Source of the DNA: Sminthopsis crassicaudata
Lineage: Eukaryota
Reading direction: 5' to 3'
NCBI RefSeq assembly: GCF_048593235.1
Contig: NC_133619.1
Span: 164,376,454 to 164,440,453 of the forward strand
DNA: 64,000 nt
Under the pieces are notes generated by a model. It saw only the letters and a program-made list of their open reading frames with translations, was not told the origin of the DNA and made no database searches. A program made the translations under genes and the position numbers. Of the stretch, positions 6,080 to 50,522 are shown one piece after another. Numbering within the stretch: the first letter of the stretch is position 1; each line of letters begins with the position of its first letter.

Positions 6080-7249
6080 ATGCTCCAACCTCACCTGCTG
6101 CAGAAAGAGCTTGGCCTCAGCACCTGTGATCAACATGGAGAACGAGTGATGTTCTTCTGTGAGGAAGACCAGAGAGCCCTCTGTGATTCCTGCTTATCAG
6201 CCCCAGAGCACAAGGACCACCAAGTCCTTCCCTTGGAGACAGCAGCTGACAAGTGCAAGAACACGCTTCTGGAGATGTGGAGGATCTTACACACCAAAGA
6301 AGAGAAATTTCAAACTGCACTGGACACAATAAGAAGAAGAGAAGTACAATTCACAGAGAATACCTACACTTTGAAAGAATCAGCTATTTCTGAATATGAA
6401 AAAATTCACCAGTTTTTATGGGATGAAGAATGTCAACGCCTGGAAAGACTGGAGGAGCGATCCAGAGGTAATGTGGTCTACCTGGAGGAGAAGGAGCACG
6501 GGCTGTCCCAACAAATCCAACATCTACAAGAAATGCTGTTCCAAGTAGAAGAGAATTTGGACAAGATGCCTTTGGCAATGATACAGGATATGCCAGGCAC
6601 TTTCAAAAACAAGGAAGAGCTCCTACTTAACAAACCTGAGCTTTCTTACATTTCCTGGCCTACCTGCCCTGTCACAGGCATGAGAGAAATGCTCATGAGT
6701 TTCCACAGGGATATAACTTTTGATCCTCAATCAGCCCATCCTCATCTCATCCTGTCTCAAGATTTGAAGAGGGTCCAGTATGCAAGCACTTTTCAGGACC
6801 TGCCTGACAACAGAGGGAGATTTGACTCTTCTCATGTGGTTTTGGGAACCCAGAAATTCACCTCAGGAAAACACTATTGGGAAGTGGAGGTGGGAGATAA
6901 GACAGAGTGGGAATTGGGCATCTGTAAAGATTCAGTCAAGAGAACGGGGCTGATCTCCCCCTCATCTGAGGATATAAATACCCTCGTGGGCTTCATATCT
7001 GGAAATGAATTCTTCCTCTGGAATTCAGAAAAAGGCTGTCAATGCAGCTTACCTTTGCAAAAATTGGGCATTTTTCTGGATTGTGAAATGAGCTATATAG
7101 CATTTTATGATGTCATTGACAGATCCCTTATCTACAGTAACTCAGACATAGATTGTGAAGGACCTCTTTGCCCTTATTTCTCTCCTTGCCTTCACTATGA
7201 CGAAAGTACCACTGGTTCACTCATCATTTGCCCCAAGAGTCCACAGTAG
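6080..7249 (+). CDS. TRIML1-like: Intronless RING-less TRIML1-like protein, diverged copy (389 aa): intact B-box2, coiled coil, PRY-SPRY/B30.2
   Basis: B-box2 CDQH..C..D..C..C..H..H; PRY 'DITFDPQSAHPHLILSQDLK'; SPRY 'FTSGKHYWEVEVGDKTEWELGICKDSV' and 'FSPCL...SLIIC', resembling recalled TRIML1. The ORF track starts at TTG 6071; the first ATG is 6080 (A at -3). Confidence 0.85.
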   Translation: MLQPHLLQKELGLSTCDQHGERVMFFCEEDQRALCDSCLSAPEHKDHQVLPLETAADKCKNTLLEMWRILHTKEEKFQTALDTIRRREVQFTENTYTLKESAISEYEKIHQFLWDEECQRLERLEERSRGNVVYLEEKEHGLSQQIQHLQEMLFQVEENLDKMPLAMIQDMPGTFKNKEELLLNKPELSYISWPTCPVTGMREMLMSFHRDITFDPQSAHPHLILSQDLKRVQYASTFQDLPDNRGRFDSSHVVLGTQKFTSGKHYWEVEVGDKTEWELGICKDSVKRTGLISPSSEDINTLVGFISGNEFFLWNSEKGCQCSLPLQKLGIFLDCEMSYIAFYDVIDRSLIYSNSDIDCEGPLCPYFSPCLHYDESTTGSLIICPKSPQ

Positions 7250-12795: not shown

Positions 12796-13501
12796 GGAAA
12801 GAGTGGAAGAACTTTGGGAAGTAGGAGTTCTCACCTTTTGAGGAGTAGATGAAAGGACCTTAAAGGGGCAAACAATAAAAAAAATGTAACAGCAACCTCC
12901 ATTCTGAAATGTTTTGTGGCAGAACAAAAAAAAAAAAAAAAAGAAGACTAACTTCTTTCTGAGAAAATATCTAAGAAGAAAGGAATCAGAAATAAGGTCC
13001 TTCTAAAATAATATTTTTAAAATCTAAAAATCCAGTGATTGAATCAAAATTATGAAAAGAGACCAAAAGAAGAAACTAAGGGGGAGGGATAGCAAAGGTT
13101 GATACTTGTTTTCTTCATGAAAGCCATGGGTGGGAAGCAATTTCTGAAAAAAATATTTTGTTTGGGGTGGGGGAGGAAGGGTGGTATGGGGGGAGTATGT
13201 GGATCTTGTGTTTGTGGGCAGATTTTTCGTTGCCATGTTTCTATCTCAGCACATAAGAGAGGTGATGTCTTGAGGCTTGCAAATGAGAATGTTGTTACTA
13301 AGTGACCCAATAAGGAGATGTCTCCAAGTTCAAGGAGGGAGGGAAGGAGTTTTCTTCTCAAGAGTTGCTGTCTCCTAAGGGTGGGATTAGAAGGAAGGTG
13401 AGAACTCAGCTCTCAAGCAGAGAGTGGGAATCCTCTCAAAAGACAAGAGTTGTCACCTTTTTGGGGGTGGAGTTAAGAGAAGGGCTAAGCAGGGGAAAAG
13501 A

Positions 13502-13509
13502 TATAAAAG
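13502..13509 (+). promoter_or_regulatory. TATA-like box of array copy 1 (others at 16606, 19707, 22814, 25920, 29022)
   Basis: TATAAAAG exactly 333 nt upstream of each start-codon position. Confidence 0.55.
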
Positions 13510-13623
13510 GCTCACACAACTCAGTGCCAATACTTCTTGCTGCCAGAGCTCCAGGGCAGGAGCTAGCTCTCTCCCTACCTGAAAAGGAAGGAATCAGAAG
13601 CTTAGGAACATACAAGCAAGAGT

Positions 13624-13834
13624 TTCATTGAAAGCCTCCAACTAGGTCTCACTTGCTTGCATCTGCCTGAACTACTTCACTGACTGGGTGACTGAGAGTG
13701 CAGAGAGAGTCTTCTCCAGGGCAGTGAGGGAGTCACTGAAGCCTCAACCTGTACAGAGTGCAGGGGAGTCATTCATCAGACAGGCTGACTTGCCGCTGAG
13801 CAGGAACCTGTAGACTCAGTGCACCACCGGCAAG
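13624..13834 (+). pseudogene. Decayed RING remnant in the leader of array copy 1 (present in all array units)
   Basis: LTC at 13654, ICLNYFTD at 13661, CTECRGVI at 13750, DLPLSRNL*TQCTTGK leading into the ATG; frameshifts and an in-frame TAG at 13811. Confidence 0.78.
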
Positions 13835-14995
13835 ATGCTCCAACCTCACCTGCTGCAGAAAGAGCTGGGCCTCAGCACCCGTGATCAACGTGGAGAACGA
13901 GTGATGTTCTTCTGTGAGGAAGACCACAGAGCCCTCTGTGATTCCTGTTTATCAGACCCAGAGCACAAGGACCACCAAGTCCTTCCCTTGGAGACAGCAG
14001 CTGACAAGTGCAACAACAAACTCCGGGAGATATGGAGGATCTTTCACACAAAAGAAAAGAAGCTTCAAACTACATGGGACACATTGAGAAGAGGAGAGGC
14101 ACAATTCACAGAGCATACCTGCACTTTGAAAGAGTCAGCTATTTCTGAATATGGGAAAATTCACGAGTTCTTGCGGGATGAAGAATGTCAACACCTTGAA
14201 GAGCTACAGCAGCAATACAGAGACAATGCAGTCCAACTGGAGGACAAGGAGCATGAGTTGTCCAAACATACCAAGAGTCTGCAACAAATGATGCTCCAAG
14301 TAGAAGAGAATTTGGACAAGATGCCCTTGGAAATGATCCAGAATATGCCAGGCACTTGGAAAAAGAAAGAAGAGCTCCTACTTAAAAAACCACAGCTTTC
14401 CTGCCTTTCCTGGCCTACCTGCCCTGTCACAGGCATGAGAGAAATGCTCATGAGTTTCTACAAGGATTTCACTTTTGATCCTGAATCAGCCCATCCTCAT
14501 CTCCTCCTGTCTGAAGATCTGAAGAGGGTCCAGTATGGAAGTATCTGTCAAGACCTGCCTGACAACAAAGGGAGACTTGACTCTGCTCTTAGGGTTTTAG
14601 GAGCCCAGGAATTCACCTCAGGAAAACATTATTGGGAAGTGGAGGTGGGTGACAAGACCGAATGGGAATTGGGCATTTGTAAAGATCCAGCCAGGAAAAA
14701 GGGGCTGATCTTCTCTCCTAAGCACGGAAGAACCATCCTAGGCTCCACATCTGAAAATGAATCCATTGTCTGGAAATCAGAAAAGGGCTATCATTGCAGC
14801 ACATCTGGACACATAGTGGGCATTTTTCTTGATTATGAAATGAGTTATATAGCATTTTATGATGCCATATATGGATACCTTAATGGCATAATAAACATAG
14901 ATTTTGAAGGGCCTCTTCGCCCTTATTTTTGTGCTTTCCTTTCAAAAGATGAGAGCACCCCTGTTTCACTGATCATTTGCCCCAAGTGTCCATAG
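13835..14995 (+). CDS. TRIML1-like: RING-less TRIML1-like protein, array copy 1 (386 aa)
   Basis: Intact ORF with a B-box lacking its first C/H ligands, coiled coil and PRY-SPRY. Confidence 0.85.
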   Translation: MLQPHLLQKELGLSTRDQRGERVMFFCEEDHRALCDSCLSDPEHKDHQVLPLETAADKCNNKLREIWRIFHTKEKKLQTTWDTLRRGEAQFTEHTCTLKESAISEYGKIHEFLRDEECQHLEELQQQYRDNAVQLEDKEHELSKHTKSLQQMMLQVEENLDKMPLEMIQNMPGTWKKKEELLLKKPQLSCLSWPTCPVTGMREMLMSFYKDFTFDPESAHPHLLLSEDLKRVQYGSICQDLPDNKGRLDSALRVLGAQEFTSGKHYWEVEVGDKTEWELGICKDPARKKGLIFSPKHGRTILGSTSENESIVWKSEKGYHCSTSGHIVGIFLDYEMSYIAFYDAIYGYLNGIINIDFEGPLRPYFCAFLSKDESTPVSLIICPKCP

Positions 14996-15100
14996 TAGAG
15001 GGCTTTCACAGATACTAATGACTAAGAATGACTATGAAAACTGAATGAAGATAACACTGCCAGTGGCACTCTATTTCTTTGTATTCCTGTTGAAATGGTC

Positions 15101-15106
15101 AATAAA
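15101..15106 (+). terminator. Polyadenylation signal of copy 1 (others at 18205, 21309, 24415, 27521, 30623)
   Basis: AATAAA ~105 nt after each stop codon. Confidence 0.6.
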
Positions 15107-16264
15107 GCATGATTATTTAAACCAAGAAAGCACTTTGTTTATCCTTCTTGTCATAAAAAAGGACAGGTCATATTTTTTTTTTTTTCCTTTCCCTTTAGTG
15201 GCTGATCTTCCAGCACCTAATGTGAAAGGGGAGGCTTTCAGAAGGATAGGAGAAAAAGCGGGAGGAAAGAAAATGGGAAGGGAAAAAGTTCCAGGTAGAA
15301 AAGGAGGAAGAGCAAAATTTGCAATGCTAAATAATTGGAGGAATAAAGAAACAACCAAAACAATAAGGAAGCAAACAAATAAATAAAGAAAAAAAAGACA
15401 AGCTCTCTTCTTGAAGGACTAGAGAGTGGAGTATGCAAAATCTGTTGCTCTGAGAAAGAGAGAGATCTACTTGAGGATAAGAGCAGACTCAAATATCTTT
15501 TATTAAATTAGAAAATATGAGATATGTACAGGCATCAAGGTGTTGTGGAGGACTGAAATAAATCAGTCCTCAACTGAGCAGGAAACTGAAGCAAGACATT
15601 TTGCCAAATTCACTTTCATTTCGTCCTTCTGTTTTTCTACCCTTCTCTTGTAGAACTTTTTGTGCCTCTTCTGAGAGTTATCCCATTATGGAATACAATC
15701 CAGAACATGAGTGATATTGTCACCATGTGTCCAGGTTAAAGAGCATTTTAATTTGAAGCCAATTAAACTCAATCTGCAATGTTCTGAGAAATTGAAGGGT
15801 AAAATGACTGTGGTCTAAAGTATATAGGTGTGAACAGCATTGTGTATCTGTCATTTCAATGGAGTATTTTTAAAGGGAGAGCACTAGCTCCAGTGAAGAG
15901 AGTGGAAGCTCTTTGCAAAGTGGGAGTTCTCACCTTCTGAGCAGTAAATAAAAGAACCTTCATGGGGCAAACAATGAAAAAAATAATAAAATTAGCAATT
16001 TAGTTCTCGGTTCTTCGTGGCAAGAACCAAAAGGAGAAACCAATGTTCTTTCCAAGTTGAATATCTAAAAAGAAAGGAATCAGAAATAAGGTCCTTTTAA
16101 AAAATCTTTTATACATATACAGATATCTTAATCTGATGATTGAATCATAATTAGGAAATGAGGCAAAAAGGGGAAAATAAGGGGGAGGGATAGCAAAGGT
16201 TGATCCTTGTTTTCTTCATGGGAGCCATGGGTGGGAAGCAATTTCTGAAAAAAAGATTTTGTCT

Positions 16265-16324
16265 GGGGTGGGGAAGGGTGGGGGGCATGCGGGGTGGGGG
16301 TGGGGGTGGAGGTGCTTGGGGGGG
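16265..16324 (+). other. G-rich, G-quadruplex-prone tract in each spacer (also 19366-19425, 22473-22532, 25579-25638, 28683-28741)
   Basis: More than seven runs of G3 or longer within 60 nt. Confidence 0.7.
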
Positions 16325-17007
16325 TGTCTTTCCTTGTCATGTTTCCATCTCAGAACATCAGAAAGGTGATATCTTGAGGTTTGCAAATGAGAATGTTACT
16401 GCTAAGTGACCCAATGGGAAGATCTTTCCAAATACTAAGAGGGAGGGAAGGAGTTTTCTTCTCAAGAGATGCTGACTCTGAAGGGTGGGATTAGAAGGAA
16501 GGTGAGAACTCAGCCCTGAAGCAGAGGGTGGAAGTCCTCTCAAAAGACAAGAGTTGTCACCTTTTTGGGGGTGGAGTTAAGAGAAGGGCTAAGCAGGGGA
16601 AAAGATATAAAAGGCTCACACAACTCAGTGCCAATACTTTTTGCTGCCAGAGCTCCAGGGCAGGAGCTAGCTCTCTCCCTACCTGAAAAGGAAGGAATCA
16701 GAAGCTTAGGAACATACAAGCAAGAGTTTCATTGAAAGCCTCCAGCTAGGTCTCACTTGCTTGCATCTGCCTGAACTACTTCACTGACTGGGTGACTGAG
16801 AGTGCAGAGAGAGTCTTCTCCAGGGCAGTGAGGGAGTCACTGAAGCCTCAACCTGTACAGAGTGCAGGGGAGTCATTCATCAGACAGGCTGACTTGCCGC
16901 TGAGCAGGAACCTGTAGACTCAGTGCACCACCGGCAAGATTCTCCAACCTCACCTGCTGCAGAAAGAGCTGGGCCTCAGCACCCGTGATCAACGTGGAGA
17001 ACGAGTG

Positions 17008-18099
17008 ATGTTCTTCTGTGAGGAAGACCACAGAGCCCTCTGTGATTCCTGTTTATCAGACCCAGAGCACAAGGACCACCAAGTCCTTCCCTTGGAGACA
17101 GCAGCTGACAAGTGCAACAACAAACTCCGGGAGATATGGAGGATCTTTCACACAAAAGAAAAGAAGCTTCAAACTACATGGGACACATTGAGAAGAGGAG
17201 AGGCACAATTCACAGAGCATACCTGCACTTTGAAAGAGTCAGCTATTTCTGAATATGGGAAAATTCACGAGTTCTTGCGGGATGAAGAATGTCAACACCT
17301 TGAAGAGCTACAGCAGCAATACAGAGACAATGCAGTCCAACTGGAGGACAAGGAGCATGAGTTGTCCAAACATACCAAGAGTCTGCAACAAATGATGCTC
17401 CAAGTAGAAGAGAATTTGGACAAGATGCCCTTGGAAATGATCCAGAATATGCCAGGCACTTGGAAAAAGAAAGAAGAGCTCCTACTTAAAAAACCACAGC
17501 TTTCCTGCCTTTCCTGGCCTACCTGCCCTGTCACAGGCATGAGAGAAATGCTCATGAGTTTCTACAAGGATTTCACTTTTGATCCTGAATCAGCCCATCC
17601 TCATCTCCTCCTGTCTGAAGATCTGAAGAGGGTCCAGTATGGAAGTATCTGTCAAGACCTGCCTGACAACAAAGGGAGACTTGACTCTGCTCTTAGGGTT
17701 TTAGGAGCCCAGGAATTCACCTCAGGAAAACATTATTGGGAAGTGGAGGTGGGTGACAAGACCGAATGGGAATTGGGCATCTGTAAAGATCCAGCCAGGA
17801 AAAAGGGGCTGATCTTCTCTCCTAAGCACGGAAGAACCATCCTAGGCTCCACATCTGAAAATGAATCCATTGTCTGGAAATCAGAAAAGGGCTATCATTG
17901 CAGCACATCTGGACACATAGTGGGCATGTTTCTTGATTATGAAATGAGTTATATAGCATTTTATGATGCCATATATGGATACCTTAATGGCATAATAAAC
18001 ATAGATTTTGAAGGGCCTCTTCGCCCTTATTTCTGTGCTTTCCTTTCAAAAGATGAGAGCACCCCTGTTTCACTGATCATTTGCCCCAAGTGTCCATAG
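17008..18099 (+). CDS. TRIML1-like: RING-less TRIML1-like protein, array copy 2; first ATG mutated to ATT (16939), next ATG gives 363 aa
   Basis: 'ggcaagATTctccaa' versus 'ggcaagATGctccaa' in the other copies; the ORF is otherwise intact. Confidence 0.7.
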   Translation: MFFCEEDHRALCDSCLSDPEHKDHQVLPLETAADKCNNKLREIWRIFHTKEKKLQTTWDTLRRGEAQFTEHTCTLKESAISEYGKIHEFLRDEECQHLEELQQQYRDNAVQLEDKEHELSKHTKSLQQMMLQVEENLDKMPLEMIQNMPGTWKKKEELLLKKPQLSCLSWPTCPVTGMREMLMSFYKDFTFDPESAHPHLLLSEDLKRVQYGSICQDLPDNKGRLDSALRVLGAQEFTSGKHYWEVEVGDKTEWELGICKDPARKKGLIFSPKHGRTILGSTSENESIVWKSEKGYHCSTSGHIVGMFLDYEMSYIAFYDAIYGYLNGIINIDFEGPLRPYFCAFLSKDESTPVSLIICPKCP

Positions 18100-20039
18100 T
18101 AGAGGGCTTTCACAGATACTAATGACTAAGAATGACTAGGAAAACTGAATGAAGATAACACTGCCAGTGGCACTCTATTTCTTTGTATTCCTGTTGAAAT
18201 GGTCAATAAAGCATGATTATTAAAACCAAGAAAGCACTTTGTTTATCCTTCTCGTCATAAAAAAGGACAGGCCATTTTTTTTTTTTCCTTTCCCTTTAGT
18301 GGCTGATCTTCCAGCACCTAATGTGAAAGGGGAGGCTTTCAGAAGGATAGGAGAAAAAGCGGGAGGAAAGAAAATGGGAAGGGAAAAAGTTCCAGGTAGA
18401 AAAGGAGGAAGAGCAAAATTTGCAATGCTAAATAATTGGAGGAATAAAGAAACAACCAAAACAATAAGGAAGCAAACAAAGAAATAAAGAAAAAAAAGAC
18501 AAGCTCTCTTCTTGAAGGACTAGAGAGTGGAGTATGCAAAATCTGTTGCTCTGAGAAAGAGAGAGATCTACTTGAGGATAAGAGCAGACTCAAATATCTT
18601 TTATTAAATTAGAAAATATGAGATATGTACAGGCATCAAGGTGTTGTGGAGGACTGAAATAAATCAGTCCTCAACTGAGCAGGAAACTGAAGCAAGACAT
18701 TTTGCCAAATTCACTTTCATTTCGTCCTTCTGTTTTTCTACCCTTCTCTTGTAGAACTTTTTGTGCCTCTTCTGAGAGTTATCCCATTATGGAATACAAT
18801 CCAGAACATGAGTGATATTGTCACCATGTGTCCAGGTTAAAGAGCATTTTAATTTGAAGCCAATTAAACTCAATCTGCAATGTTCTGAGAAATTGAAGGG
18901 TAAAATGACTGTGGTCTAAAGTATATAGGTGTGAACAGCATTGTGTATCTGTCATTTCAATGGAGTATTTTTAAAGGGAGAGCACTAGCCCCAGTGAAGA
19001 GAGTGGAAGCACTTTGCAAAGTGGGAGTTCTCACCTTCTGAGCAGTAAATAAAAGAACCTTCGTGGGGCAAACAATGAAAAAAATAATAAAATTAGCAAT
19101 TTAGTTCTCGGCTCTTTGTGGCAAGAACCAAAAGGAGAAACCAATGTTCTTTCCAAGTTGAATATCTAAAAAGAAAGGAATCAGAAATAAGGTCCTTTTA
19201 AAAAATCTTTTATACATATACAGATATCTTAATCTGATGATTGAATCATAATTAGGAAATGAGGCAAAAAGGGGAAAATAAGGGGGAGGGATAGCAAAGG
19301 TTGATCCTTGTTTTCTTCATGGGAGCCATGGGTGGGAAGCAATTTCTGAAAAAAAGATTTTGTCTGGGGTGGGGAAGGGTGGGGGGCATGCGGGGTGGGG
19401 GTGGGGGTGGAGGTGCTTGGGGGGGTGTCTTTCCTTGTCATGTTTCCATCTCAGAACATCAGAAAGGTGATATCTTGAGGTTTGCAAATGAGAATGTTAC
19501 TGCTAAGTGACCCAATGGGAAGATCTTTCCAAATACTAAGAGGGAGGGAAGGAGTTTTCTTCTCAAGAGATGCTGACTCTGAAGGGTGGGATTAGAAGGA
19601 AGGTGAGAACTCAGCCCTGAAGCAGAGGGTGGAAGTCCTCTCAAAAGACAAGAGTTGTCACCTTTTTGGGGGTGGAGTTAAGAGAAGGGCTAAGCAGGGG
19701 AAAAGATATAAAAGGCTCACACAACTCAGTGCCTATACTTTTTGCTGCCAGAGCTCCAGGGCAGGAGCTAGCTCTCTCCCTACCTGAAAAGGAAGGGATC
19801 AGAAGCTTAGGAACATACAAGCAAGAGTTTCATTGAAAGCCTCCAGCTAGGTCTCACTTGCTTGCATCTGCCTGAACTACTTCACTGACTGGGTGACTGA
19901 GAGTGCAGAGAGAGTCTTCTCCAGGGCAGTGAGGGAGTCACTGAAGCCTCAACCTGTACAGAGTGCAGGGGAGTCATTCATCAGACAGGCTGACTTGCCG
20001 CTGAGCAGGAACCTGTAGACTCAGTGCACCACCGGCAAG

Positions 20040-21201
20040 ATGCTCCAACCTCACCTGCTGCAGAAAGAGATGGGCCTCAGCACCCGTGATCAACGTGGAG
20101 AACGAGTGATGTTCTTCTGTGAGGAAGACCACAGAGCCCTCTGTGATTCCTGTTTATCAGACCCAGAGCACAAGGACCACCAAGTCCTTCCCTTGGAGAC
20201 AGCAGCTGACAAGTGCAACAACAAACTCCGGGAGATATGGAGGATCTTTCACACAAAAGAAAAGAAGCTTCAAACTGCATGGGACACATTGAGAAGAGGA
20301 GAGGCACAATTCACAGAGCATACCTGCACTTTGAAAGAGTCAGCTATTTCTGAATATGGGAAAATTCACGAGTTCTTGCGGGATGAAGAATGTCAACACC
20401 TTGAAGAGCTACAGCAGCAATACAGAGACAATGCAGTCCAACTGGAGGACAAGGAGCATGAGTTGTCCAAACATACCAAGAGTCTGCAACAAATGATGCT
20501 CCAAGTAGAAGAGGATTTGGACAAGATGCCCTTGGAAATGATCCAGAATATGCCAGGCACTTGGAAAAAGAAAGAAGAGCTCCTACTTAAAAAAACCACA
20601 GCTTTCCTGCCTTTCCTGGCCTACCTGCCCTGTCACAGGCATGAGAGAAATGCTCATGAGTTTCTACAAGGATTTCACTTTTGATCCTGAATCAGCCCAT
20701 CCTCATCTCCTCCTGTCTGAAGATCTGAAGAGGGTCCAGTATGGAAGTATCTGTCAAGACCTGCCTGACAACAAAGGGAGACTTGACTCTGCTCTTAGGG
20801 TTTTAGGAGCCCAGGAATTCACCTCAGGAAAACATTATTGGGAAGTGGAGGTGGGTGACAAGACCGAATGGGAATTGGGCATCTGTAAAGATCCAGCCAG
20901 GAAAAAGGGGCTGATCTTCTCTCCTAAGCACGGAAGAACCATCCTAGGCTCCACATCTGAAAATGAATCCATTGTCTGGAAATCAGAAAAGGGCTATCAT
21001 TGCAGCACATCTGGACACATAGTGGGCATTTTTCTTGATTATGAAATGAGTTATATAGCATTTTATGATGCCATATATGGATACCTTAATGGCATAATAA
21101 ACATAGATTTTGAAGGGCCACTTCGCCCTTATTTCTGTGCTTTCCTTTCAAAAGATGAGAGCACTCCTGTTTCACTGATCATTTGCCCCAAGTGTCCATA
21201 G
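20040..21201 (+). pseudogene. TRIML1-like: TRIML1-like array copy 3 with a +1 frameshift (A7 instead of A6 at 20589-20595); real pseudogene/truncated allele or a homopolymer error
   Basis: ORF is split into 20040-20684 and 20641-21201; the only disruption seen is one extra A. Confidence 0.7.
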
Positions 21202-23146
21202 TAGAGGGCTTTCACAGATACTAATGACTAAGAATGACTTTATGAAAACTGAAAGAAGATAACACTGCCAGTGGCACTCTATTTCTTTGTATTCCTGTTG
21301 AAATGGTCAATAAAGCATGATTATTTAAACCAAGAAAGCACTTTGTTTATCCTTCTTGTCATAAAAAAGGACAGGTCATATTTTTTTTTTTTTCCTTTCC
21401 CTTTAGTGGCTGATCTTCCAGCACCTAATGTGAAAGGGGAGGCTTTCAGAAGGATAGGAGAAAAAGCGGGAGGAAAGAAAATGGGAAGGGAAAAAGTTCC
21501 AGGTAGAAAAGGAGGAAGAGCAAAATTTGCAATGCTAAATAATTGGAGGAATAAAGAAACAACCAAAACAATAAGGAAGCAAACAAATAAATAAAGAAAA
21601 AAAAGACAAGCTCTCTTCTTGAAGGACTAGAGAGTGGAGTATGCAAAATCTGTTGCTCTGAGAAAGAGAGAGATCTACTTGAGGATAAGAGCAGACTCAA
21701 ATATCTTTTATTAAATTAGAAAATATGAGATATGTACAGGCATCAAGGTGTTGTGGAGGACTGAAATAAATCAGTCCTCAACTGAGCAGGAAACTGAAGC
21801 AAGACATTTTGCCAAATTCACTTTCATTTCGTCCTTCTGTTTTTCTACCCTTCTCTTGTAGAACTTTTTGTGCCTCTTCTGAGAGTTATCCCATTATGGA
21901 ATACAATCCAGAACATGAGTGATATTGTCACCATGTGTCCAGGTTAAAGAGCATTTTAATTTAAAGCCAATTAAACTCAATCTGCAATGTTCTGAGAAAT
22001 TGAAGGGTAAAATGACTGTGGTCTAAAGTATATAGGTGTGAACAGCATTGTGTATCTGTCATTTCAATGGAGTATTTTTAAAGGGAGAGCACTAGCCCCA
22101 GTGAAGAGAGTGGAAGCACTTTGCAAAGTGGGAGTTCTCACCTTCTGAGCAGTAAATAAAAGAACCTTCGTGGGGCAAACAATGAAAAAAATAATAAAAT
22201 TAGCAATTTAGTTCTCGGTTCTTTGTGGCAAGAACCAAAAGGAGAAACCAATGTTCTTTCCAAGTTGAATATCTAAAAAGAAAGGAATCAGAAATAAGGT
22301 CCTTTTAAAAAATCTTTTATACATATACAGATATCTTAATCTGATGATTGAATCATAATTAGGAAATGAGGCAAAAAGGGGAAAATAAGGGGGAGGGATA
22401 GCAAAGGTTGATCCTTGTTTTCTTCATGGGAGCCATGGGTGGGAAGCAATTTCTGAAAAAAAGATTTTGTCTGGGGTGGGGAAGGGTGGGGGGCATGCGG
22501 GGTGGGGGTGGGGGTGGGGGTGGTTGGGGGGGTGTCTTTCCTTGTCATGTTTCCATCTCAGCACATCAGAAAGGTGATATCTTGAGGTTTGCAAATGAGA
22601 ATGTTACTGCTAAGTGACCCAATGGGAAGATCTTTCCAAATACTAAGAGGGAGGGAAGGAGTTTTCTTCTCAAGAGATGCTGACTCTGAAGGGTGGGATT
22701 AGAAGGAAGGTGAGAGCTCAGCCCTGAAGCAGAGGGTGGAAGTCCTCTCAAAAGACAAGAGTTGTCACCTTTTGGGGGGTGGAGTTAAGAGAAGGGCTAA
22801 GCAGGGGAAAAGATATAAAAGGCTCACACAACTCAGTGCCAATACTTTTTGCTGCCAGAGCTCCAGGGCAGGAGCTAACTCTCTCCCTACCTGAAAAGGA
22901 AGGGATCAGAAGCTTAGGAACATACAAGCAAGAGTTTCATTGAAAGCCCTCAGCTAGGTCTCACTTGCTTGCATCTGCCTGAACTACTTCACTGACTGGG
23001 TGACTGAGAGTCTAGAGAGAGTCTTCTCCAGGGCAGTGAGGGAGTCACTGAAGCCTCAACCTGTACAGAGTGCAGGGGAGTCATTCATCAGACAGGCTGA
23101 CTTGCCGCTGAGCAGGAACCTGTAGACTCAGTGCACCACCGGCAAG

Positions 23147-24307
23147 ATGCTCCAACCTCACCTGCTGCAGAAAGAGATGGGCCTCAGCACCCGTGATCAA
23201 CGTGGAGAACGAGTGATGTTCTTCTGTGAGGAAGACCACAGAGCCCTCTGTGATTCCTGTTTATCAGACCCAGAGCACAAGGACCACCAAGTCCTTCCCT
23301 TGGAGACAGCAGCTGACAAGTGCAACAACAAACTCCGGGAGATATGGAGGATCTTTCACACAAAAGAAAAGAAGCTTCAAACTGCATGGGACACATTGAG
23401 AAGAGGAGAGGCACAATTCACAGAGCATACCTGCACTTTGAAAGAGTCAGCTATTTCTGAATATGGGAAAATTCACGAGTTCTTACGGGATGAAGAATGT
23501 CAACACCTTGAAGAGCTACAGCAGCAATACAGAGACAATGCAGTCCAACTGGAGGACAAGGAGCATGAGTTGTCCAAACATACCAAGAGTCTGCAACAAA
23601 TGATGCTCCAAGTAGAAGAGGATTTGGACAAGATGCCCTTGGAAATGATCCAGAATATGCCAGGCACTTGGAAAAAGAAAGAAGAGCTCCTACTTAAAAA
23701 ACCACAGCTTTCCTGCCTTTCCTGGCCTACCTGCCCTGTCACAGGCATGAGAGAAATGCTCATGAGTTTCTACAAGGATTTCACTTTTGATCCTGAATCA
23801 GCCCATCCTCATCTCCTCCTGTCTGAAGATCTGAAGAGGGTCCAGTATGGAAGTATCTGTCAAGACCTGCCTGACAACAAAGGGAGACTTGACTCTGCTC
23901 TTAGGGTTTTAGGAGCCCAGGAATTCACCTCAGGAAAACATTATTGGGAAGTGGAGGTGGGTGACAAGACCGAATGGGAATTGGGCATCTGTAAAGATCC
24001 AGCCAGGAAAAAGGGGCTGATCTTCTCTCCTAAGCACGGAAGAACCATCCTAGGCTCCACATCTGAAAATGAATCCATTGTCTGGAAATCAGAAAAGGGC
24101 TATCATTGCAGCACATCTGGACACATAGTGGGCATTTTTCTTGATTATGAAATGAGTTATATAGCATTTTATGATGCCATATATGGATACCTTAATGGCA
24201 TAATAAACATAGATTTTGAAGGGCCACTTCGCCCTTATTTCTGTGCTTTCCTTTCAAAAGATGAGAGCACTCCTGTTTCACTGATCATTTGCCCCAAGTG
24301 TCCATAG
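23147..24307 (+). CDS. TRIML1-like: RING-less TRIML1-like protein, array copy 4 (386 aa)
   Basis: Intact ORF; translation identical to copies 5 and 6. Confidence 0.85.
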   Translation: MLQPHLLQKEMGLSTRDQRGERVMFFCEEDHRALCDSCLSDPEHKDHQVLPLETAADKCNNKLREIWRIFHTKEKKLQTAWDTLRRGEAQFTEHTCTLKESAISEYGKIHEFLRDEECQHLEELQQQYRDNAVQLEDKEHELSKHTKSLQQMMLQVEEDLDKMPLEMIQNMPGTWKKKEELLLKKPQLSCLSWPTCPVTGMREMLMSFYKDFTFDPESAHPHLLLSEDLKRVQYGSICQDLPDNKGRLDSALRVLGAQEFTSGKHYWEVEVGDKTEWELGICKDPARKKGLIFSPKHGRTILGSTSENESIVWKSEKGYHCSTSGHIVGIFLDYEMSYIAFYDAIYGYLNGIINIDFEGPLRPYFCAFLSKDESTPVSLIICPKCP

Positions 24308-26252
24308 TAGAGGGCTTTCACAGATACTAATGACTAAGAATGACTTTATGAAAACTGAAAGAAGATAACACTGCCAGTGGCACTCTATTTCTTTGTATTC
24401 CTGTTGAAATGGTCAATAAAGCATGATTATTTAAACCAAGAAAGCACTTTGTTTATCCTTCTTGTCATAAAAAAGGACAGGTCATATTTTTTTTTTTTTC
24501 CTTTCCCTTTAGTGGCTGATCTTCCAGCACCTAATGTGAAAGGGGAGGCTTTCAGAAGGATAGGAGAAAAAGCGGGAGGAAAGAAAATGGGAAGGGAAAA
24601 AGTTCCAGGTAGAAAAGGAGGAAGAGCAAAATTTGCAATGCTAAATAATTGGAGGAATAAAGAAACAACCAAAACAATAAGGAAGCAAACAAATAAATAA
24701 AGAAAAAAAAGACAAGCTCTCTTCTTGAAGGACTAGAGAGTGGAGTATGCAAAATCTGTTGCTCTGAGAAAGAGAGAGATCTACTTGAGGATAAGAGCAG
24801 ACTCAAATATCTTTTATTAAATTAGAAAATATGAGATATGTACAGGCATCAAGGTGTTGTGGAGGACTGAAATAAATCAGTCCTCAACTGAGCAGGAAAC
24901 TGAAGCAAGACATTTTGCCAAATTCACTTTCATTTCGTCCTTCTGTTTTTCTACCCTTCTCTTGTAGAACTTTTTGTGCCTCTTCTGAGAGTTATCCCAT
25001 TATGGAATACAATCCAGAACATGAGTGATATTGTCACCATGTGTCCAGGTTAAAGAGCATTTTAATTTAAAGCCAATTAAACTCAATCTGCAATGTTCTG
25101 AGAAATTGAAGGGTAAAATGACTGTGGTCTAAAGTATATAGGTGTGAACAGCATTGTGTATCTGTCATTTCAATGGAGTATTTTTAAAGGGAGAGCACTA
25201 GCCCCAGTGAAGAGAGTGGAAGCACTTTGCAAAGTGGGAGTTCTCACCTTCTGAGCAGTAAATAAAAGAACCTTCGTGGGGCAAACAATGAAAAAAATAA
25301 TAAAATTAGCAATTTAGTTCTCGGTTCTTTGTGGCAAGAACCAAAAGGAGAAACCAATGTTCTTTCCAAGTTGAATATCTAAAAAGAAAGGAATCAGAAA
25401 TAAGGTCCTTTTAAAAAATCTTTTATACATATACAGATATCTTAATCTGATGATTGAATCATAATTAGGAAATGAGGCAAAAAGGGGAAAATAAGGGGGA
25501 GGGATAGCAAAGGTTGATCCTTGTTTTCTTCATGGGAGCCATGGGTGGGAAGCAATTTCTGAAAAAAAGATTTTGTCTGGGGTGGGGAAGGGTGGGGGGC
25601 ATGCGGGGTGGGGGTGGGGGTGGGGGTGGTTGGGGGGGTGTCTTTCCTTGTCATGTTTCCATCTCAGCACATCAGAAAGGTGATATCTTGAGGTTTGCAA
25701 ATGAGAATGTTACTGCTAAGTGACCCAATGGGAAGATCTTTCCAAATACTAAGAGGGAGGGAAGGAGTTTTCTTCTCAAGAGATGCTGACTCTGAAGGGT
25801 GGGATTAGAAGGAAGGTGAGAACTCAGCCCTGAAGCAGAGGGTGGAAGTCCTCTCAAAAGACAAGAGTTGTCACCTTTTGGGGGGTGGAGTTAAGAGAAG
25901 GGCTAAGCAGGGGAAAAGATATAAAAGGCTCACACAACTCAGTGCCAATACTTTTTGCTGCCAGAGCTCCAGGGCAGGAGCTAGCTCTCTCCCTACCTGA
26001 AAAGGAAGGGATCAGAAGCTTAGGAACATACAAGCAAGAGTTTCATTGAAAGCCTCCAGCTAGGTCTCACTTGCTTGCATCTGCCTGAACTACTTCACTG
26101 ACTGGGTGACTGAGAGTGCAGAGAGAGTCTTCTCCAGGGCAGTGAGGGAGTCACTGAAGCCTCAACCTGTACAGAGTGCAGGGGAGTCATTCATCAGACA
26201 GGCTGACTTGCCGCTGAGCAGGAACCTGTAGACTCAGTGCACCACCGGCAAG

Positions 26253-27413
26253 ATGCTCCAACCTCACCTGCTGCAGAAAGAGATGGGCCTCAGCACCCGT
26301 GATCAACGTGGAGAACGAGTGATGTTCTTCTGTGAGGAAGACCACAGAGCCCTCTGTGATTCCTGTTTATCAGACCCAGAGCACAAGGACCACCAAGTCC
26401 TTCCCTTGGAGACAGCAGCTGACAAGTGCAACAACAAACTCCGGGAGATATGGAGGATCTTTCACACAAAAGAAAAGAAGCTTCAAACTGCATGGGACAC
26501 ATTGAGAAGAGGAGAGGCACAATTCACAGAGCATACCTGCACTTTGAAAGAGTCAGCTATTTCTGAATATGGGAAAATTCACGAGTTCTTACGGGATGAA
26601 GAATGTCAACACCTTGAAGAGCTACAGCAGCAATACAGAGACAATGCAGTCCAACTGGAGGACAAGGAGCATGAGTTGTCCAAACATACCAAGAGTCTGC
26701 AACAAATGATGCTCCAAGTAGAAGAGGATTTGGACAAGATGCCCTTGGAAATGATCCAGAATATGCCAGGCACTTGGAAAAAGAAAGAAGAGCTCCTACT
26801 TAAAAAACCACAGCTTTCCTGCCTTTCCTGGCCTACCTGCCCTGTCACAGGCATGAGAGAAATGCTCATGAGTTTCTACAAGGATTTCACTTTTGATCCT
26901 GAATCAGCCCATCCTCATCTCCTCCTGTCTGAAGATCTGAAGAGGGTCCAGTATGGAAGTATCTGTCAAGACCTGCCTGACAACAAAGGGAGACTTGACT
27001 CTGCTCTTAGGGTTTTAGGAGCCCAGGAATTCACCTCAGGAAAACATTATTGGGAAGTGGAGGTGGGTGACAAGACCGAATGGGAATTGGGCATCTGTAA
27101 AGATCCAGCCAGGAAAAAGGGGCTGATCTTCTCTCCTAAGCACGGAAGAACCATCCTAGGCTCCACATCTGAAAATGAATCCATTGTCTGGAAATCAGAA
27201 AAGGGCTATCATTGCAGCACATCTGGACACATAGTGGGCATTTTTCTTGATTATGAAATGAGTTATATAGCATTTTATGATGCCATATATGGATACCTTA
27301 ATGGCATAATAAACATAGATTTTGAAGGGCCACTTCGCCCTTATTTCTGTGCTTTCCTTTCAAAAGATGAGAGCACTCCTGTTTCACTGATCATTTGCCC
27401 CAAGTGTCCATAG
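26253..27413 (+). CDS. TRIML1-like: RING-less TRIML1-like protein, array copy 5 (386 aa)
   Basis: Intact ORF. Confidence 0.85.
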   Translation: MLQPHLLQKEMGLSTRDQRGERVMFFCEEDHRALCDSCLSDPEHKDHQVLPLETAADKCNNKLREIWRIFHTKEKKLQTAWDTLRRGEAQFTEHTCTLKESAISEYGKIHEFLRDEECQHLEELQQQYRDNAVQLEDKEHELSKHTKSLQQMMLQVEEDLDKMPLEMIQNMPGTWKKKEELLLKKPQLSCLSWPTCPVTGMREMLMSFYKDFTFDPESAHPHLLLSEDLKRVQYGSICQDLPDNKGRLDSALRVLGAQEFTSGKHYWEVEVGDKTEWELGICKDPARKKGLIFSPKHGRTILGSTSENESIVWKSEKGYHCSTSGHIVGIFLDYEMSYIAFYDAIYGYLNGIINIDFEGPLRPYFCAFLSKDESTPVSLIICPKCP

Positions 27414-29354
27414 TAGAGGGCTTTCACAGATACTAATGACTAAGAATGACTTTATGAAAACTGAAAGAAGATAACACTGCCAGTGGCACTCTATTTCTTT
27501 GTATTCCTGTTGAAATGGTCAATAAAGCATGATTATTTAAACCAAGAAAGCACTTTGTTTATCCTTCTTGTCATAAAAAGGACAGGTCATATTTTTTTTT
27601 TTTTCCTTTCCCTTTAGTGGCTGATCTTCCAGCACCTAATGTGAAAGGGGAGGCTTTCAGAAGGATAGGAGAAAAAGCGGGAGGAAAGAAAATGGGAAGG
27701 GAAAAAGTTCCAGGTAGAAAAGGAGGAAGAGCAAAATTTGCAATGCTAAATAATTGGAGGAATAAAGAAACAACCAAAACAATAAGGAAGCAAACAAATA
27801 AATAAAGAAAAAAAAGACAAGCTCTCTTCTTGAAGGACTAGAGAGTGGAGTATGCAAAATCTGTTGCTCTGAGAAAGAGAGAGATCTACTTGAGGATAAG
27901 AGCAGACTCAAATATCTTTTATTAAATTAGAAAATATGAGATATGTACAGGCATCAAGGTGTTGTGGAGGACTGAAATAAATCAGTCCTCAACTGAGCAG
28001 GAAACTGAAGCAAGACATTTTGCCAAATTCACTTTCATTTCGTCCTTCTGTTTTTCTACCCTTCTCTTGTAGAACTTTTTGTGCCTCTTCTGAGAGTTAT
28101 CCCATTATGGAATACAATCCAGAACATGAGTGATATTGTCACCATGTGTCCAGGTTAAAGAGCATTTTAATTTGAAGCCAATTAAACTCAATCTGCAATG
28201 TTCTGAGAAATTGAAGGGTAAAATGACTGTGGTCTAAAGTATATAGGTGTGAACAGCATTGTGTATCTGTCATTTCAATGGAGTATTTTTAAAGGGAGAG
28301 CACTAGCCCCAGTGAAGAGAGTGGAAGCACTTTGCAAAGTGGGAGTTCTCACCTTCTGAGCAGTAAATAAAAGAACCTTCGTGGGGCAAACAATGAAAAA
28401 AATAATAAAATTAGCAATTTAGTTCTCGGTTCTTTGTGGCAAGAACCAAAAGGAGAAACCAATGTTCTTTCCAAGTTGAATATCTAAAAAGAAAGGAATC
28501 AGAAATAAGGTCCTTTTAAAAAATCTTTTATACATATACAGATATCTTAATCTGATGATTGAATCATAATTAGGAAATGAGGCAAAAAGGGGAAAATAAG
28601 GGGGAGGGATAGCAAAGGTTGATCCTTGTTTTCTTCATGGGAGCCATGGGTGGGAAGCAATTTCTGAAAAAAGATTTTGTCTGGGGTGGGGAAGGGTGGG
28701 GGGCATGCGGGGTGGGGGTGGGGGTGGGGGTGGTTGGGGGGTGTCTTTCCTTGTCATGTTTCCATCTCAGCACATCAGAAAGGTGATATCTTGAGGTTTG
28801 CAAATGAGAATGTTACTGCTAAGTGACCCAATGGGAAGATCTTTCCAAATACTAAGAGGAGGGAAGGAGTTTTCTTCTCAAGAGATGCTGACTCTGAAGG
28901 GTGGGATTAGAAGGAAGGTGAGAACTCAGCCCTGAAGCAGAGGGTGGAAGTCCTCTCAAAAGACAAGAGTTGTCACCTTTTGGGGGGTGGAGTTAAGAGA
29001 AGGGCTAAGCAGGGGAAAAGATATAAAAGGCTCACACAACTCAGTGCCAATACTTTTTGCTGCCAGAGCTCCAGGGCAGGAGCTAGCTCTCTCCCTACCT
29101 GAAAAGGAAGGGATCAGAAGCTTAGGAACATACAAGCAAGAGTTTCATTGAAAGCCTCCAGCTAGGTCTCACTTGCTTGCATCTGCCTGAACTACTTCAC
29201 TGACTGGGTGACTGAGAGTGCAGAGAGAGTCTTCTCCAGGGCAGTGAGGGAGTCACTGAAGCCTCAACCTGTACAGAGTGCAGGGGAGTCATTCATCAGA
29301 CAGGCTGACTTGCCGCTGAGCAGGAACCTGTAGACTCAGTGCACCACCGGCAAG

Positions 29355-30515
29355 ATGCTCCAACCTCACCTGCTGCAGAAAGAGATGGGCCTCAGCACCC
29401 GTGATCAACGTGGAGAACGAGTGATGTTCTTCTGTGAGGAAGACCACAGAGCCCTCTGTGATTCCTGTTTATCAGACCCAGAGCACAAGGACCACCAAGT
29501 CCTTCCCTTGGAGACAGCAGCTGACAAGTGCAACAACAAACTCCGGGAGATATGGAGGATCTTTCACACAAAAGAAAAGAAGCTTCAAACTGCATGGGAC
29601 ACATTGAGAAGAGGAGAGGCACAATTCACAGAGCATACCTGCACTTTGAAAGAGTCAGCTATTTCTGAATATGGGAAAATTCACGAGTTCTTACGGGATG
29701 AAGAATGTCAACACCTTGAAGAGCTACAGCAGCAATACAGAGACAATGCAGTCCAACTGGAGGACAAGGAGCATGAGTTGTCCAAACATACCAAGAGTCT
29801 GCAACAAATGATGCTCCAAGTAGAAGAGGATTTGGACAAGATGCCCTTGGAAATGATCCAGAATATGCCAGGCACTTGGAAAAAGAAAGAAGAGCTCCTA
29901 CTTAAAAAACCACAGCTTTCCTGCCTTTCCTGGCCTACCTGCCCTGTCACAGGCATGAGAGAAATGCTCATGAGTTTCTACAAGGATTTCACTTTTGATC
30001 CTGAATCAGCCCATCCTCATCTCCTCCTGTCTGAAGATCTGAAGAGGGTCCAGTATGGAAGTATCTGTCAAGACCTGCCTGACAACAAAGGGAGACTTGA
30101 CTCTGCTCTTAGGGTTTTAGGAGCCCAGGAATTCACCTCAGGAAAACATTATTGGGAAGTGGAGGTGGGTGACAAGACCGAATGGGAATTGGGCATCTGT
30201 AAAGATCCAGCCAGGAAAAAGGGGCTGATCTTCTCTCCTAAGCACGGAAGAACCATCCTAGGCTCCACATCTGAAAATGAATCCATTGTCTGGAAATCAG
30301 AAAAGGGCTATCATTGCAGCACATCTGGACACATAGTGGGCATTTTTCTTGATTATGAAATGAGTTATATAGCATTTTATGATGCCATATATGGATACCT
30401 TAATGGCATAATAAACATAGATTTTGAAGGGCCACTTCGCCCTTATTTCTGTGCTTTCCTTTCAAAAGATGAGAGCACTCCTGTTTCACTGATCATTTGC
30501 CCCAAGTGTCCATAG
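29355..30515 (+). CDS. TRIML1-like: RING-less TRIML1-like protein, array copy 6 (386 aa)
   Basis: Intact ORF. Confidence 0.85.
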   Translation: MLQPHLLQKEMGLSTRDQRGERVMFFCEEDHRALCDSCLSDPEHKDHQVLPLETAADKCNNKLREIWRIFHTKEKKLQTAWDTLRRGEAQFTEHTCTLKESAISEYGKIHEFLRDEECQHLEELQQQYRDNAVQLEDKEHELSKHTKSLQQMMLQVEEDLDKMPLEMIQNMPGTWKKKEELLLKKPQLSCLSWPTCPVTGMREMLMSFYKDFTFDPESAHPHLLLSEDLKRVQYGSICQDLPDNKGRLDSALRVLGAQEFTSGKHYWEVEVGDKTEWELGICKDPARKKGLIFSPKHGRTILGSTSENESIVWKSEKGYHCSTSGHIVGIFLDYEMSYIAFYDAIYGYLNGIINIDFEGPLRPYFCAFLSKDESTPVSLIICPKCP

Positions 30516-31739
30516 TAGAGGGCTTTCACAGATACTAATGACTAAGAATGACTTTATGAAAACTGAAAGAAGATAACACTGCCAGTGGCACTCTATTTCT
30601 TTGTATTCCTGTTGAAATGGTCAATAAAGCATGATTATTTAAACCAAGAAAGCACTTTGTTTATCCTTCTTGTCATAAAAAAGGACAGGTCATATTTTTT
30701 TTTTTTTCCTTTCCCTTTAGTGGCTGATCTTCCAGCACCTAATGTGAAAGGGGAGGCTTTCAGAAGGATAGGAGAAAAAGCGGGAGGAAAGAAAATGGGA
30801 AGGGAAAAAGTTCCAGGTAGAAAAGGAGGAAGAGCAAAATTTGCAATGCTAAATAATTGGAGGAATAAAGAAACAACCAAAACAATAAGGAAGCAAACAA
30901 ATAAATAAAGAAAAAAAAGACAAGCTCTCTTCTTGAAGGACTAGAGAGTGGAGTATGCAAAATCTGTTGCTCTGAGAAAGAGAGAGATCTACTTGAGGAT
31001 AAGAGCAGACTCAAATATCTTTTATTAAATTAGAAAATATGAGATATGTACAGGCATCAAGGTGTTGTGGAGGACTGAAATAAATCAGTCCTCAACTGAG
31101 CAGGAAACTGAAGCAAGACATTTTGCCAAATTCACTTTCATTTCGTCCTTCTGTTTTTCTACCCTTCTCTTGTAGAACTTTTTGTGCCTCTTCTGAGAGT
31201 TATCCCATTATGGAATACAATCCAGAACATGAGTGATATTGTCACCATGTGTCCAGGTTAAAGAGCATTTTAATTTGAAGCCAATTAAACTCAATCTGCA
31301 ATGTTCTGAGAAATTGAAGGGTAAAATGACTGTGGTCTAAAGTATATAGGTGTGAACAGCATTGTGTATCTGTCATTTCAATGGAGTATTTTTAAAGGGA
31401 GAGCACTAGCCCCAGTGAAGAGAGTGGAAGCACTTTGCAAAGTGGGAGTTCTCACCTTCTGAGCAGTAAATAAAAGAACCTTCGTGGGGCAAACAATGAA
31501 AAAAATAATAAAATTAGCAATTTAGTTCTCGGCTCTTTGTGGCAAGAACCAAAAGGAGAAACCAATGTTCTTTCCAAGTTGAATATCTAAAAAGAAAGGA
31601 ATCAGAAATAAGGTCCTTTTAAAAAATCTTTTATACATATACAGATATCTTAATCTGATGATTGAATCATAATTAGGAAATGAGGCAAAAAGGGGAAAAT
31701 AAGGGGGAGGGATAGCAAAGGTTGATCCTTGTTTTCTTC

Positions 31740-49813: not shown

Positions 49814-50056
49814 NNNNNNNNNNNNNNNNNNNNNNNNNNNNNNNNNNNNNNNNNNNNNNNNNNNNNNNNNNNNNNNNNNNNNNNNNNNNNNNNNNNNNNN
49901 NNNNNNNNNNNNNNNNNNNNNNNNNNNNNNNNNNNNNNNNNNNNNNNNNNNNNNNNNNNNNNNNNNNNNNNNNNNNNNNNNNNNNNNNNNNNNNNNNNNN
50001 NNNNNNNNNNNNNNNNNNNNNNNNNNNNNNNNNNNNNNNNNNNNNNNNNNNNNNNN
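49814..50056. other. Assembly gap (243 N)
   Basis: Run of N. Confidence 1.
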
Positions 50057-50522
50057 ATAAATACCTCAGGTCAAATTGTGATGAGAATTCTCTCTGCCAA
50101 AACAAACAATAATGACAATAACAACAACAAAACAAAAAAAATGGGTTTCTTTGAAACAATCCTCTCATCTGTGAAATAGGAATAACATACACCATATTAA
50201 TTATTTCACAGTATTATTGTGTAAGTCAAATTGTAGAAACCATATGAATAACTTTATAAGAATAAAGTTCCCTAAAAGCATAAATATCATCCATATTAGT
50301 GGGTAATATGTCTTAGTGAACAGTAGATTTGGATTCCAAAAGAAAATAAGTTTTTCTTCTGGCACATACATATGTCTATGATTATGAGGAAAACTATTAA
50401 TCTCTTTGCAGCAGAGCAAATCATGATAAGTATATAATTAACAAACTAGTTGATATGCATCAATAGTAATTCCCTATACTGACAGAATCACATGTCCGTT
50501 ACTACTAAGAGCAAAATAGTTA

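Follow-up and report, generated by a model that had tools for sequence, protein, structure and literature searches.

The 64,000-nucleotide (nt) window analysed here comes from the fat-tailed dunnart, Sminthopsis crassicaudata, and contains a tandem array of TRIM-type genes in which two zinc ligands of the B-box have been replaced by arginine. The array spans positions 12976–31740 of the + strand, the strand that also carries the other genes and gene features of the window described here, and comprises about six units with a period of 3.10–3.11 kb; the first ~450 nt of unit 1 are diverged. Each unit carries a single-exon open reading frame (ORF) of 386 codons, belonging to an intronless, RING-less TRIML1-like gene with a B-box, a coiled coil and a PRY/SPRY region. 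The coding sequences of copies 1 (13835–14995), 4 (23147–24307), 5 (26253–27413) and 6 (29355–30515) are intact. Copy 2 (16939–18099) has lost its start codon (ATG to ATT), and its first in-frame methionine would be Met24, downstream of the altered residues; copy 3 (20040–21201) carries a frameshift, an extra A in an A-run near position 20589 (coding position ~550). Upstream of the array lies a diverged RING-less TRIML1-like gene (6080–7249), whose intact single-exon ORF of 389 codons retains all eight B-box ligands.

Pfam profiles detected a B-box, a PRY (63.1 bits) and a SPRY domain (54.7 bits) in the array ORF, with PRY and SPRY above the cut-off; no RING was detected in it by Pfam. The B-box (PF00643) of the array copy scored 30.9 bits against a cut-off of 24.1, and the match was partial, covering residues 21–52 only (profile positions 12–42 of 42); that of the diverged copy scored 42.3 bits over residues 14–52. 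When compared with the PDB, the PRY/SPRY region matched those of TRIM58, TRIM11 and TRIM21 with E values of 1e-32 to 1e-34. The best protein matches, at 99% identity, were Sminthopsis crassicaudata entries named "putative E3 ubiquitin-protein ligase TRIML1"; three entries in this best-match cluster are the window's own products, and an exact look-up placed copies 4–6 at 164,399,600–164,407,968 of chromosome CM109183.1 (assembly GCA_048593235.1). Eutherian TRIML1 proteins share 36–40% identity with the array proteins. One true TRIML1 orthologue per marsupial has been identified by Zhang et al. (PMC6993854). We treated the array genes, on the basis of these sequence relationships, as TRIML1-like paralogues within a large intronless marsupial expansion and not as TRIML1 itself, the NCBI names being similarity-based. 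RING-less TRIML1-like proteins also occur in Tasmanian devil, antechinus, brushtail possum and monito del monte.

Codons 16–19 of array copy 1 (13880–13891) are CGTGATCAACGT (CGT-GAT-CAA-CGT, encoding R-D-Q-R), whereas those of the diverged copy (6125–6136) are TGTGATCAACAT (TGT-GAT-CAA-CAT, encoding C-D-Q-H, the ancestral state). A 39-nt pattern around the site matched the + strand of the window seven times, with 0 matches expected by chance: one match lies at 6113, and the other six run from 13868 to 29388 at spacings of 3101–3107 nt. The two CGT codons are present in all six array copies of the window, where the R-D-Q-R patch, located where a B-box2 has its first zinc pair, occupies 13880–13891, 16984–16995, 20085–20096, 23192–23203, 26298–26309 and 29400–29411 in copies 1 to 6, respectively, each range beginning with codon 16. 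The array coding sequence holds 9 CpGs in 1161 nt (observed/expected 0.15), and each of the two arginine changes created one CpG. The initial annotation was thus accurate in its reading of both codon sets and in its remark that both changes create CpGs in a CpG-poor sequence; its statement that the arginines are found in all amplified copies holds inside the window but fails beyond it, since a 98.5%-identical sister array at 165.6 Mb carries cysteine at residue 16 and arginine at residue 19 (TGT..CGT). Below, the states of residues 16 and 19 are written C..H, C..R and R..R.

The first 87 residues encoded by the diverged copy aligned without gaps to the B-box2 domains of TRIM21 (5jpx) and TRIM5 (5va4, 5eiu, 5k3q, 5w9a, 4tn3), giving the ligand pattern C16-x2-H19-x7-C27-x2-D30-x4-C35-x2-C38-x5-H44-x2-H47. 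In the cross-brace topology of B-box2, pairs 1 and 3 form zinc site 1 (C16/H19/C35/C38) and pairs 2 and 4 form site 2 (C27/D30/H44/H47). The array copies retain six of the eight ligands: C16 and H19 are arginine in all six window copies, and site 2 and the CxxC pair (C35/C38) are kept in every one. The array copies lack the full set of eight ligands in two cross-braced sites that characterizes a B-box2, and the earlier claim that the first Cys/His pair is lost while the second site is intact agrees with this alignment to solved structures.

Among 60 aligned homologues, the eight ligands are kept by every one of the 48 marsupial sequences, with or without a RING, and the array protein alone departs from this set; the B-box region of eutherian TRIML1 in the same alignment is completely degenerate. 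At the DNA level, the two positions are occupied by T and A in every outgroup copy, the Tasmanian devil gene included. On this comparison we took the arginine pair to be a derived change. Polarized changes on the stem of the array comprise 33 nonsynonymous and 17 synonymous substitutions, of which only three amino-acid changes fall within the 55 B-box codons: C16R, H19R and A41D (GCC to GAC at codon 41; 13955–13957 in copy 1). Two of these three strike the four site-1 ligands (hypergeometric p = 0.012). For the whole protein without constraint, at least two of the eight ligands would be struck with p = 0.14, which is not rare; the significance of the change therefore comes from the conservation of all eight ligands in the 48 marsupial sequences.

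Loss of the RING preceded the loss of the ligand pair, as the initial annotation had proposed. A decayed RING remnant lies upstream of copy 1 (13658–13813), in frame with the ATG; it reads CICLNYFTDWVTESAERVFSRAV...SRNL-stop, has most of its zinc ligands replaced and is bounded by stop codons. The upstream remnants were read by eye against the family consensus C-x-ICLxYFTDPVTxxCGHSFCxxC...CPECR. The same remnant is found upstream of every copy and also in C..H paralogues and Tasmanian devil proteins, and the loss of the pair came later and stepwise. An N-terminal RING with eight zinc ligands is absent from the array genes, in which only this untranslated upstream remnant is left. The closest RING-bearing relative is a brushtail possum protein of 468 residues; because it is encoded in 1407 contiguous bases, the ancestor was an intronless full-length TRIM gene whose RING decayed in place. 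A record look-up for a RING-bearing dunnart relative (P0085) returned no match.

We compared the window with four further dunnart loci on the same chromosome and with one Tasmanian devil locus. About 50 kb upstream lies a single inverted array-type copy (L003), which has R..R and Asp41. The sister array (L002; 165.60 Mb, 1.2 Mb from the window array) contains copies at L002:16023–17183 and L002:19113–20273 with C..R and the ancestral Ala41. The first copy of this locus (L002:10001–11161; P0002) is a recombinant gene with a full C..H B-box, its N-terminal half being as in the diverged copy of the window and its C-terminal half of the array type. Inserted within the L002 array is a long interspersed nuclear element (LINE)-like ORF of 788 codons (L002:12401–14767, - strand) that encodes a reverse-transcriptase domain (RVT_1). 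An array of a sister sub-family (L001; 167.16 Mb; 89% identical, period ~3.27 kb) has two C..H copies and a third copy, L001:13264–14433, with R..R. In a tree built from coding sequences and flanks, the C..R copies were basal in the array clade and the window and L003 copies nested within it (support 65%). The most parsimonious order of events would be H19R first, then C16R together with A41D, a change that accompanies C16R as a derived state in the window array and L003 and is not found in the C..R sister array. The reverse changes, CGT to TGT and CGT to CAT, are CpG-deamination transitions, so the arginine codons are mutationally prone to return to exactly the ancestral codons.

The R..R copy at L001:13264–14433 differs from its sister copies by four coding differences, two of which are the same CGT changes (its neighbours have TGT..CAT). 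The nearest array-specific markers, at -8/-5 and +113, are not carried into this copy. To judge from these markers, the patch most likely arrived by a gene-conversion tract of at most ~117 nt, and independent recurrence of both changes would be very unlikely. A long conversion tract from the window array was considered and rejected, as the upstream differences of this copy are ancestral states common to all outgroups; any tract must have been short (no more than ~117 nt) because only the two codon changes are array-derived. Between sub-families, synonymous divergence is 0.03–0.06 in the first 165 coding bases (window 13835–14000 and all paralogues) versus 0.17–0.33 elsewhere, a pattern suggesting that gene conversion has repeatedly homogenized the 5' end. 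Derived sites common to window copy 2 and L002:16023–17183, for example coding position 990 (T to G, I330M) and several in the 3' flank, suggest exchange between two arrays separated by 1.2 Mb. GC-biased gene conversion was also considered as a driver of the arginine changes; both are weak-to-strong changes, but the array stem is balanced (18 weak-to-strong, 20 strong-to-weak), and this candidate was dropped.

To assess constraint, we counted variable sites among nine array-type copies from three loci. The 21 variable coding sites comprise 10 nonsynonymous (the lost start codon and C16R included) and 11 synonymous ones, where the observed transition/transversion mix predicts a nonsynonymous share of 72%; the deficit has a binomial p of 0.016. 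Per site, variability is 0.011 at nonsynonymous sites, 0.047 at synonymous sites and 0.059 in the 5' flank, so that the nonsynonymous density is about one fifth of the 5' flank density. Only the 5' flank was used as a neutral yardstick; the 3' flank was rejected because it is not homologous across loci beyond ~240 nt past the stop codon. In the PRY/SPRY region, 1 nonsynonymous site stands against 6 synonymous sites. Pairwise ratios of nonsynonymous to synonymous rates (omega) between the three loci are 0.15–0.21, and the full ORF is preserved in seven of the nine copies, across three loci spanning 1.3 Mb. These figures argue for purifying selection on the array copies after H19R, and they do not fit the plain form of the alternative raised at the outset, the neutral decay of unexpressed genes. 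No nonsynonymous excess or other sign of positive selection on the array genes was found. Among RING-less C..H paralogues, constraint is strongest in the B-box (omega 0.13–0.27); the domain must therefore have a role without the RING, and the loss of the pair marks a true shift in state.

AlphaFold2 models of the array protein and the diverged copy were computed from alignments that contained the same 59 homologues. In both models a long helix (residues 52–160) is followed by shorter helices to residue 182 and a beta-sandwich SPRY domain, as expected of a coiled-coil TRIM protein; the best matches among solved folds were TRIM72 (7xt2, 7xv2) and the coiled coil/B30.2 part of pyrin (4cg4). The mean predicted local distance difference test score (pLDDT) is 76.4 for the whole array protein and 80.5 for the diverged copy. 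Modelling of both B-boxes, proposed as a check in the initial annotation, located the drop in confidence within this domain to residues 11–20 (mean 47 in the array protein, 73 in the diverged copy), the values for residues 21–50 being 83–87 and 89, respectively; a small beta bridge between residues 15 and 22 was present in the C..H model only. The models fit a B-box whose first knuckle is unanchored while its remainder is kept. Many amino-acid changes of the array stem lie in SPRY loops (window 14690–14900, array residues ~286–353), a region that also has a three-residue deletion relative to the diverged copy. The pLDDT of residues 301–330 is 52–68 in the array protein and 78–83 in the diverged copy, and the binding surface of the array SPRY may have changed.

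Taken together, we consider it moderately probable that zinc site 1 has really been lost, that the genes concerned still code for non-catalytic coiled-coil/SPRY proteins under constraint, that high copy number probably made the loss tolerable, and that duplication and gene conversion spread it. Two transitions in the amplified lineage, in the most parsimonious order CAT to CGT and then TGT to CGT, converted both ligands to arginine and left site 1 with C35 and C38 only. With so many copies present, the first hit, H19R, was probably less costly; the loss of His19 would then have left Cys16 free to change. Tandem duplication then multiplied the change, and a short gene-conversion tract most likely moved the patch to the copy of the other sub-array. 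Judging from their coding sequences, the array proteins would still be made and constrained, and they probably form the usual antiparallel coiled-coil dimer with two SPRY domains and no E3 ligase activity. In such a protein the N-terminal loop (residues ~12–20) would be freed from zinc while site 2 still holds the B-box core, and the RING-independent job that the B-box performs in C..H paralogues (for example self-association or coiled-coil capping) would be lost or altered. The array proteins may act as non-catalytic, SPRY-based binders or modulators, by analogy with eutherian TRIML2. TRIML2 has lost RING and B-box and kept coiled coil and PRY/SPRY, with its SPRY domain under positive selection (PMC6993854).

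Several points weigh against this account. The selection test comprises only 21 sites, a small number, and they are not fully independent, as the copies exchange sequence; two of the six window copies are disabled (one by loss of the start codon, one by the frameshift); and the omega of the array stem is only ~0.5. The order of the two changes rests on weakly supported nodes, and an alternative is an older R..R state followed by CpG reversion to TGT and CAT. The models are weak evidence, as AlphaFold2 leaves zinc out and responds little to point changes. The dunnart, genome-assembly and TRIM papers found gave no expression data on the array genes, and a dunnart methylome paper makes no mention of TRIML genes. 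Moreover, B-box loss can be plain decay, as in a second RING-less TRIML1-like array with heavier decay of its B-box (L005:1311–20173, the P0041 cluster, CM109183.1 at ~234.28 Mb). This array has seven open copies of 383 codons and a period of ~2.95 kb. Its ligand losses are H19Q, C35F and H44L, plus C38S or D30G in some copies, so that both zinc sites are affected; the B-box is no longer detected by Pfam, and variation among the copies is neutral-like (40 nonsynonymous to 14 synonymous). The figures for this array refer to the single-exon 383-codon ORFs, a spliced gene model of 406 residues having been left out. It resembles the window array in being a tandem array of the same species and family, intronless in its 383-codon form, that has lost B-box ligands, but differs from it in which ligands are lost, in the involvement of both sites, in the failure of Pfam to detect the domain and in its neutral-like variation.

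The main and serious rival, which we nevertheless regard as rather unlikely, is that a young array with redundant copies is decaying neutrally or almost so: a copy with a damaged B-box happened to be amplified by unequal crossing-over, the genes are turning into pseudogenes, and the arginines have no function. The two window copies already disabled, the decay of the L005 B-box and the stem omega all fit this explanation, as does the finding that hits on two or more ligands would not be rare in an unconstrained protein; the array copies also differ by only ~1%, which leaves little time for selection to have acted. It accounts less well for the nonsynonymous deficit in the nine copies and its strength in the PRY/SPRY region, for a nonsynonymous density so far below that of the 5' flank, and for full ORFs in most copies at three loci. 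In addition, the ratio of nonsynonymous to synonymous sites in the array is unlike that of L005 (Fisher p = 0.054).

The initial annotation had favoured an adaptive model, in which loss of site 1 was selected to stop polymerization of the B-box, yielding a dimer that caps or poisons a TRIM lattice or serves as a ligand decoy. The strong constraint on the B-box in C..H paralogues, where its loss would mark a functional shift, and the continued constraint on the SPRY domain speak for such a model, as do the spread of the R..R patch to a copy of another sub-array and the persistence of two CpG-containing arginine codons in seven copies. The RING-less TRIML2 has moreover been proposed to be a non-catalytic dominant inhibitor of inflammation in trophoblast (PMC6993854). 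However, the trimer formed by the TRIM5 B-box is built by W117, L118, R121 and L132 (Wagner et al. 2016, PMC4936894), and in our B-box2 alignment, in which dunnart residue n corresponds to rhesus TRIM5alpha residue n+81, these positions are D36, S37, S40 and P51 in the whole marsupial family, the full C..H copies included. Neither the hydrophobic core (W117, L118, L132) nor R121 of a lattice-forming TRIM5alpha-type B-box is thus present, and since these residues are missing throughout the family there is no indication of a lattice to cap. Capping or blocked polymerization on the TRIM5 model was not borne out. The lack of any nonsynonymous excess or other mark of positive selection, and of a weak-to-strong excess, also counts against the adaptive model, and duplication and gene conversion suffice to explain the spread of the patch. 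We hold this model to be quite improbable; a decoy or inhibitor role of the array proteins is possible.

A very improbable alternative is that the zinc site has been remodelled, with C35 and C38 still binding zinc through substitutes such as D41, nearby His or Asp residues, or the CxxC of a second chain. Precisely those copies with C16R also show A41D as a derived change, which the C..R array lacks, and C35 and C38 are kept in all copies, yet the proposal is purely conjectural, model confidence is low at residues 11–20, arginine is not a zinc ligand, and the co-occurrence of A41D and C16R may be linkage over 76 nt. An assembly or sequencing artefact (collapsed or mis-polished repeats) is hardly credible even though 99%-identical tandem arrays are difficult to assemble, as both bases are shared by six window copies that differ elsewhere, recur in the inverted solitary copy ~50 kb away and in the 10%-diverged L001 copy 2.8 Mb away, and are accompanied by an intermediate state at a third locus.

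Domain losses of a comparable kind are known among TRIM proteins. In eutherian TRIML1, substitution of ligands did away with the B-box (Zhang et al. 2020, Mol Biol Evol, PMC6993854). The dunnart genes belong to the same wider TRIML1-like group as eutherian TRIML1 and TRIML2 and share with them the loss of RING or B-box elements and, with TRIML2, the retention of coiled coil and PRY/SPRY. They differ in that their losses are independent and marsupial-specific, within an intronless tandem expansion that is not orthologous to TRIML2, a gene described as eutherian-specific (PMC6993854), in that the array has lost one of two zinc sites with the remaining B-box nearly unchanged, and in that the C..H, C..R and R..R states coexist as near-identical paralogues. 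TRIM5alpha and TRIM21 (B-box2 structures 5eiu, 5f7t, 5iea, 5jpx) share the ligand pattern and spacing and the order B-box, coiled coil, PRY/SPRY. Unlike these, the array proteins have neither a RING nor the first ligand pair, and the TRIM5 interface positions hold D/S/S/P across the marsupial family; a lattice of the TRIM5 type should not be presumed. TRIM proteins that lack a RING, for example TRIM14, TRIM16, TRIM20/pyrin, TRIM29 and TRIM44, keep B-box and coiled coil and often B30.2. TRIM16 has been described as a RING-less TRIM (PMC3357404). The array proteins are like this group in lacking a RING and keeping B-box and coiled coil, and pyrin (4cg4) and TRIM72 were their best structural matches; those genes, however, are old and single-copy with complete B-box zinc sites, whereas the dunnart array is made of young tandem copies, each with a half-site.

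A more speculative extension, which we regard as decidedly unlikely, is that the array is a marsupial functional counterpart of eutherian TRIML2 that evolved independently, with its path kept as living paralogues from a RING-bearing intronless ancestor through C..H and C..R to R..R. The patch would then have been kept against CpG decay, and carried from one array to another by gene conversion, because the half-B-box protein was favoured, for example by inhibiting RING-bearing TRIML1-like paralogues in reproduction or innate immunity. Under the reading that we prefer, the loss of site 1 in genes under constraint, the locus has more general bearing. The B-box is the least understood part of TRIM proteins, and near-identical natural paralogues with four, three or two site-1 ligands are available here with no RING to confound them; the C..H, C..R and R..R series is suited to showing what one B-box zinc site does in folding, self-association and RING-independent function. 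Domain loss of the TRIML type, RING first and then B-box, has occurred more than once in mammals. RING-less TRIML has been regarded as eutherian-specific (PMC6993854), and the many RING-less TRIML1-like genes of marsupials qualify the view that eutherians invented it in connection with invasive placentation. Should the genes prove to be decaying, the locus would remain a clear case of a damaging change spread by tandem amplification and gene conversion.

Some further features were noted in the window. An A-rich stretch containing AATAAA lies ~350 nt 3' of the stop codon in every unit (15342–15395 in unit 1) and is likely to be the polyadenylation region. ORFs of 107–113 codons just 3' of array copies (15045–15386, 21271–21594, 24377–24700 and 30585–30908) run into this A-rich AATAAA region; they are of low complexity and probably spurious. 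Beyond the array (31740–64000), the GC content falls from ~0.42 to ~0.30, and this part of the window contains no ORF of at least 120 codons except one of 128 codons and artefacts of an N run. The N run, the only one in the window (49814–50056), is far from the array genes, and the artefacts are ORFs of 144–145 codons at 49742–50195 that span it. The AT-rich right half also contains, at 58404–61213, a decayed relative of the RVT_1 ORF of the sister array, to which it is 85% identical.

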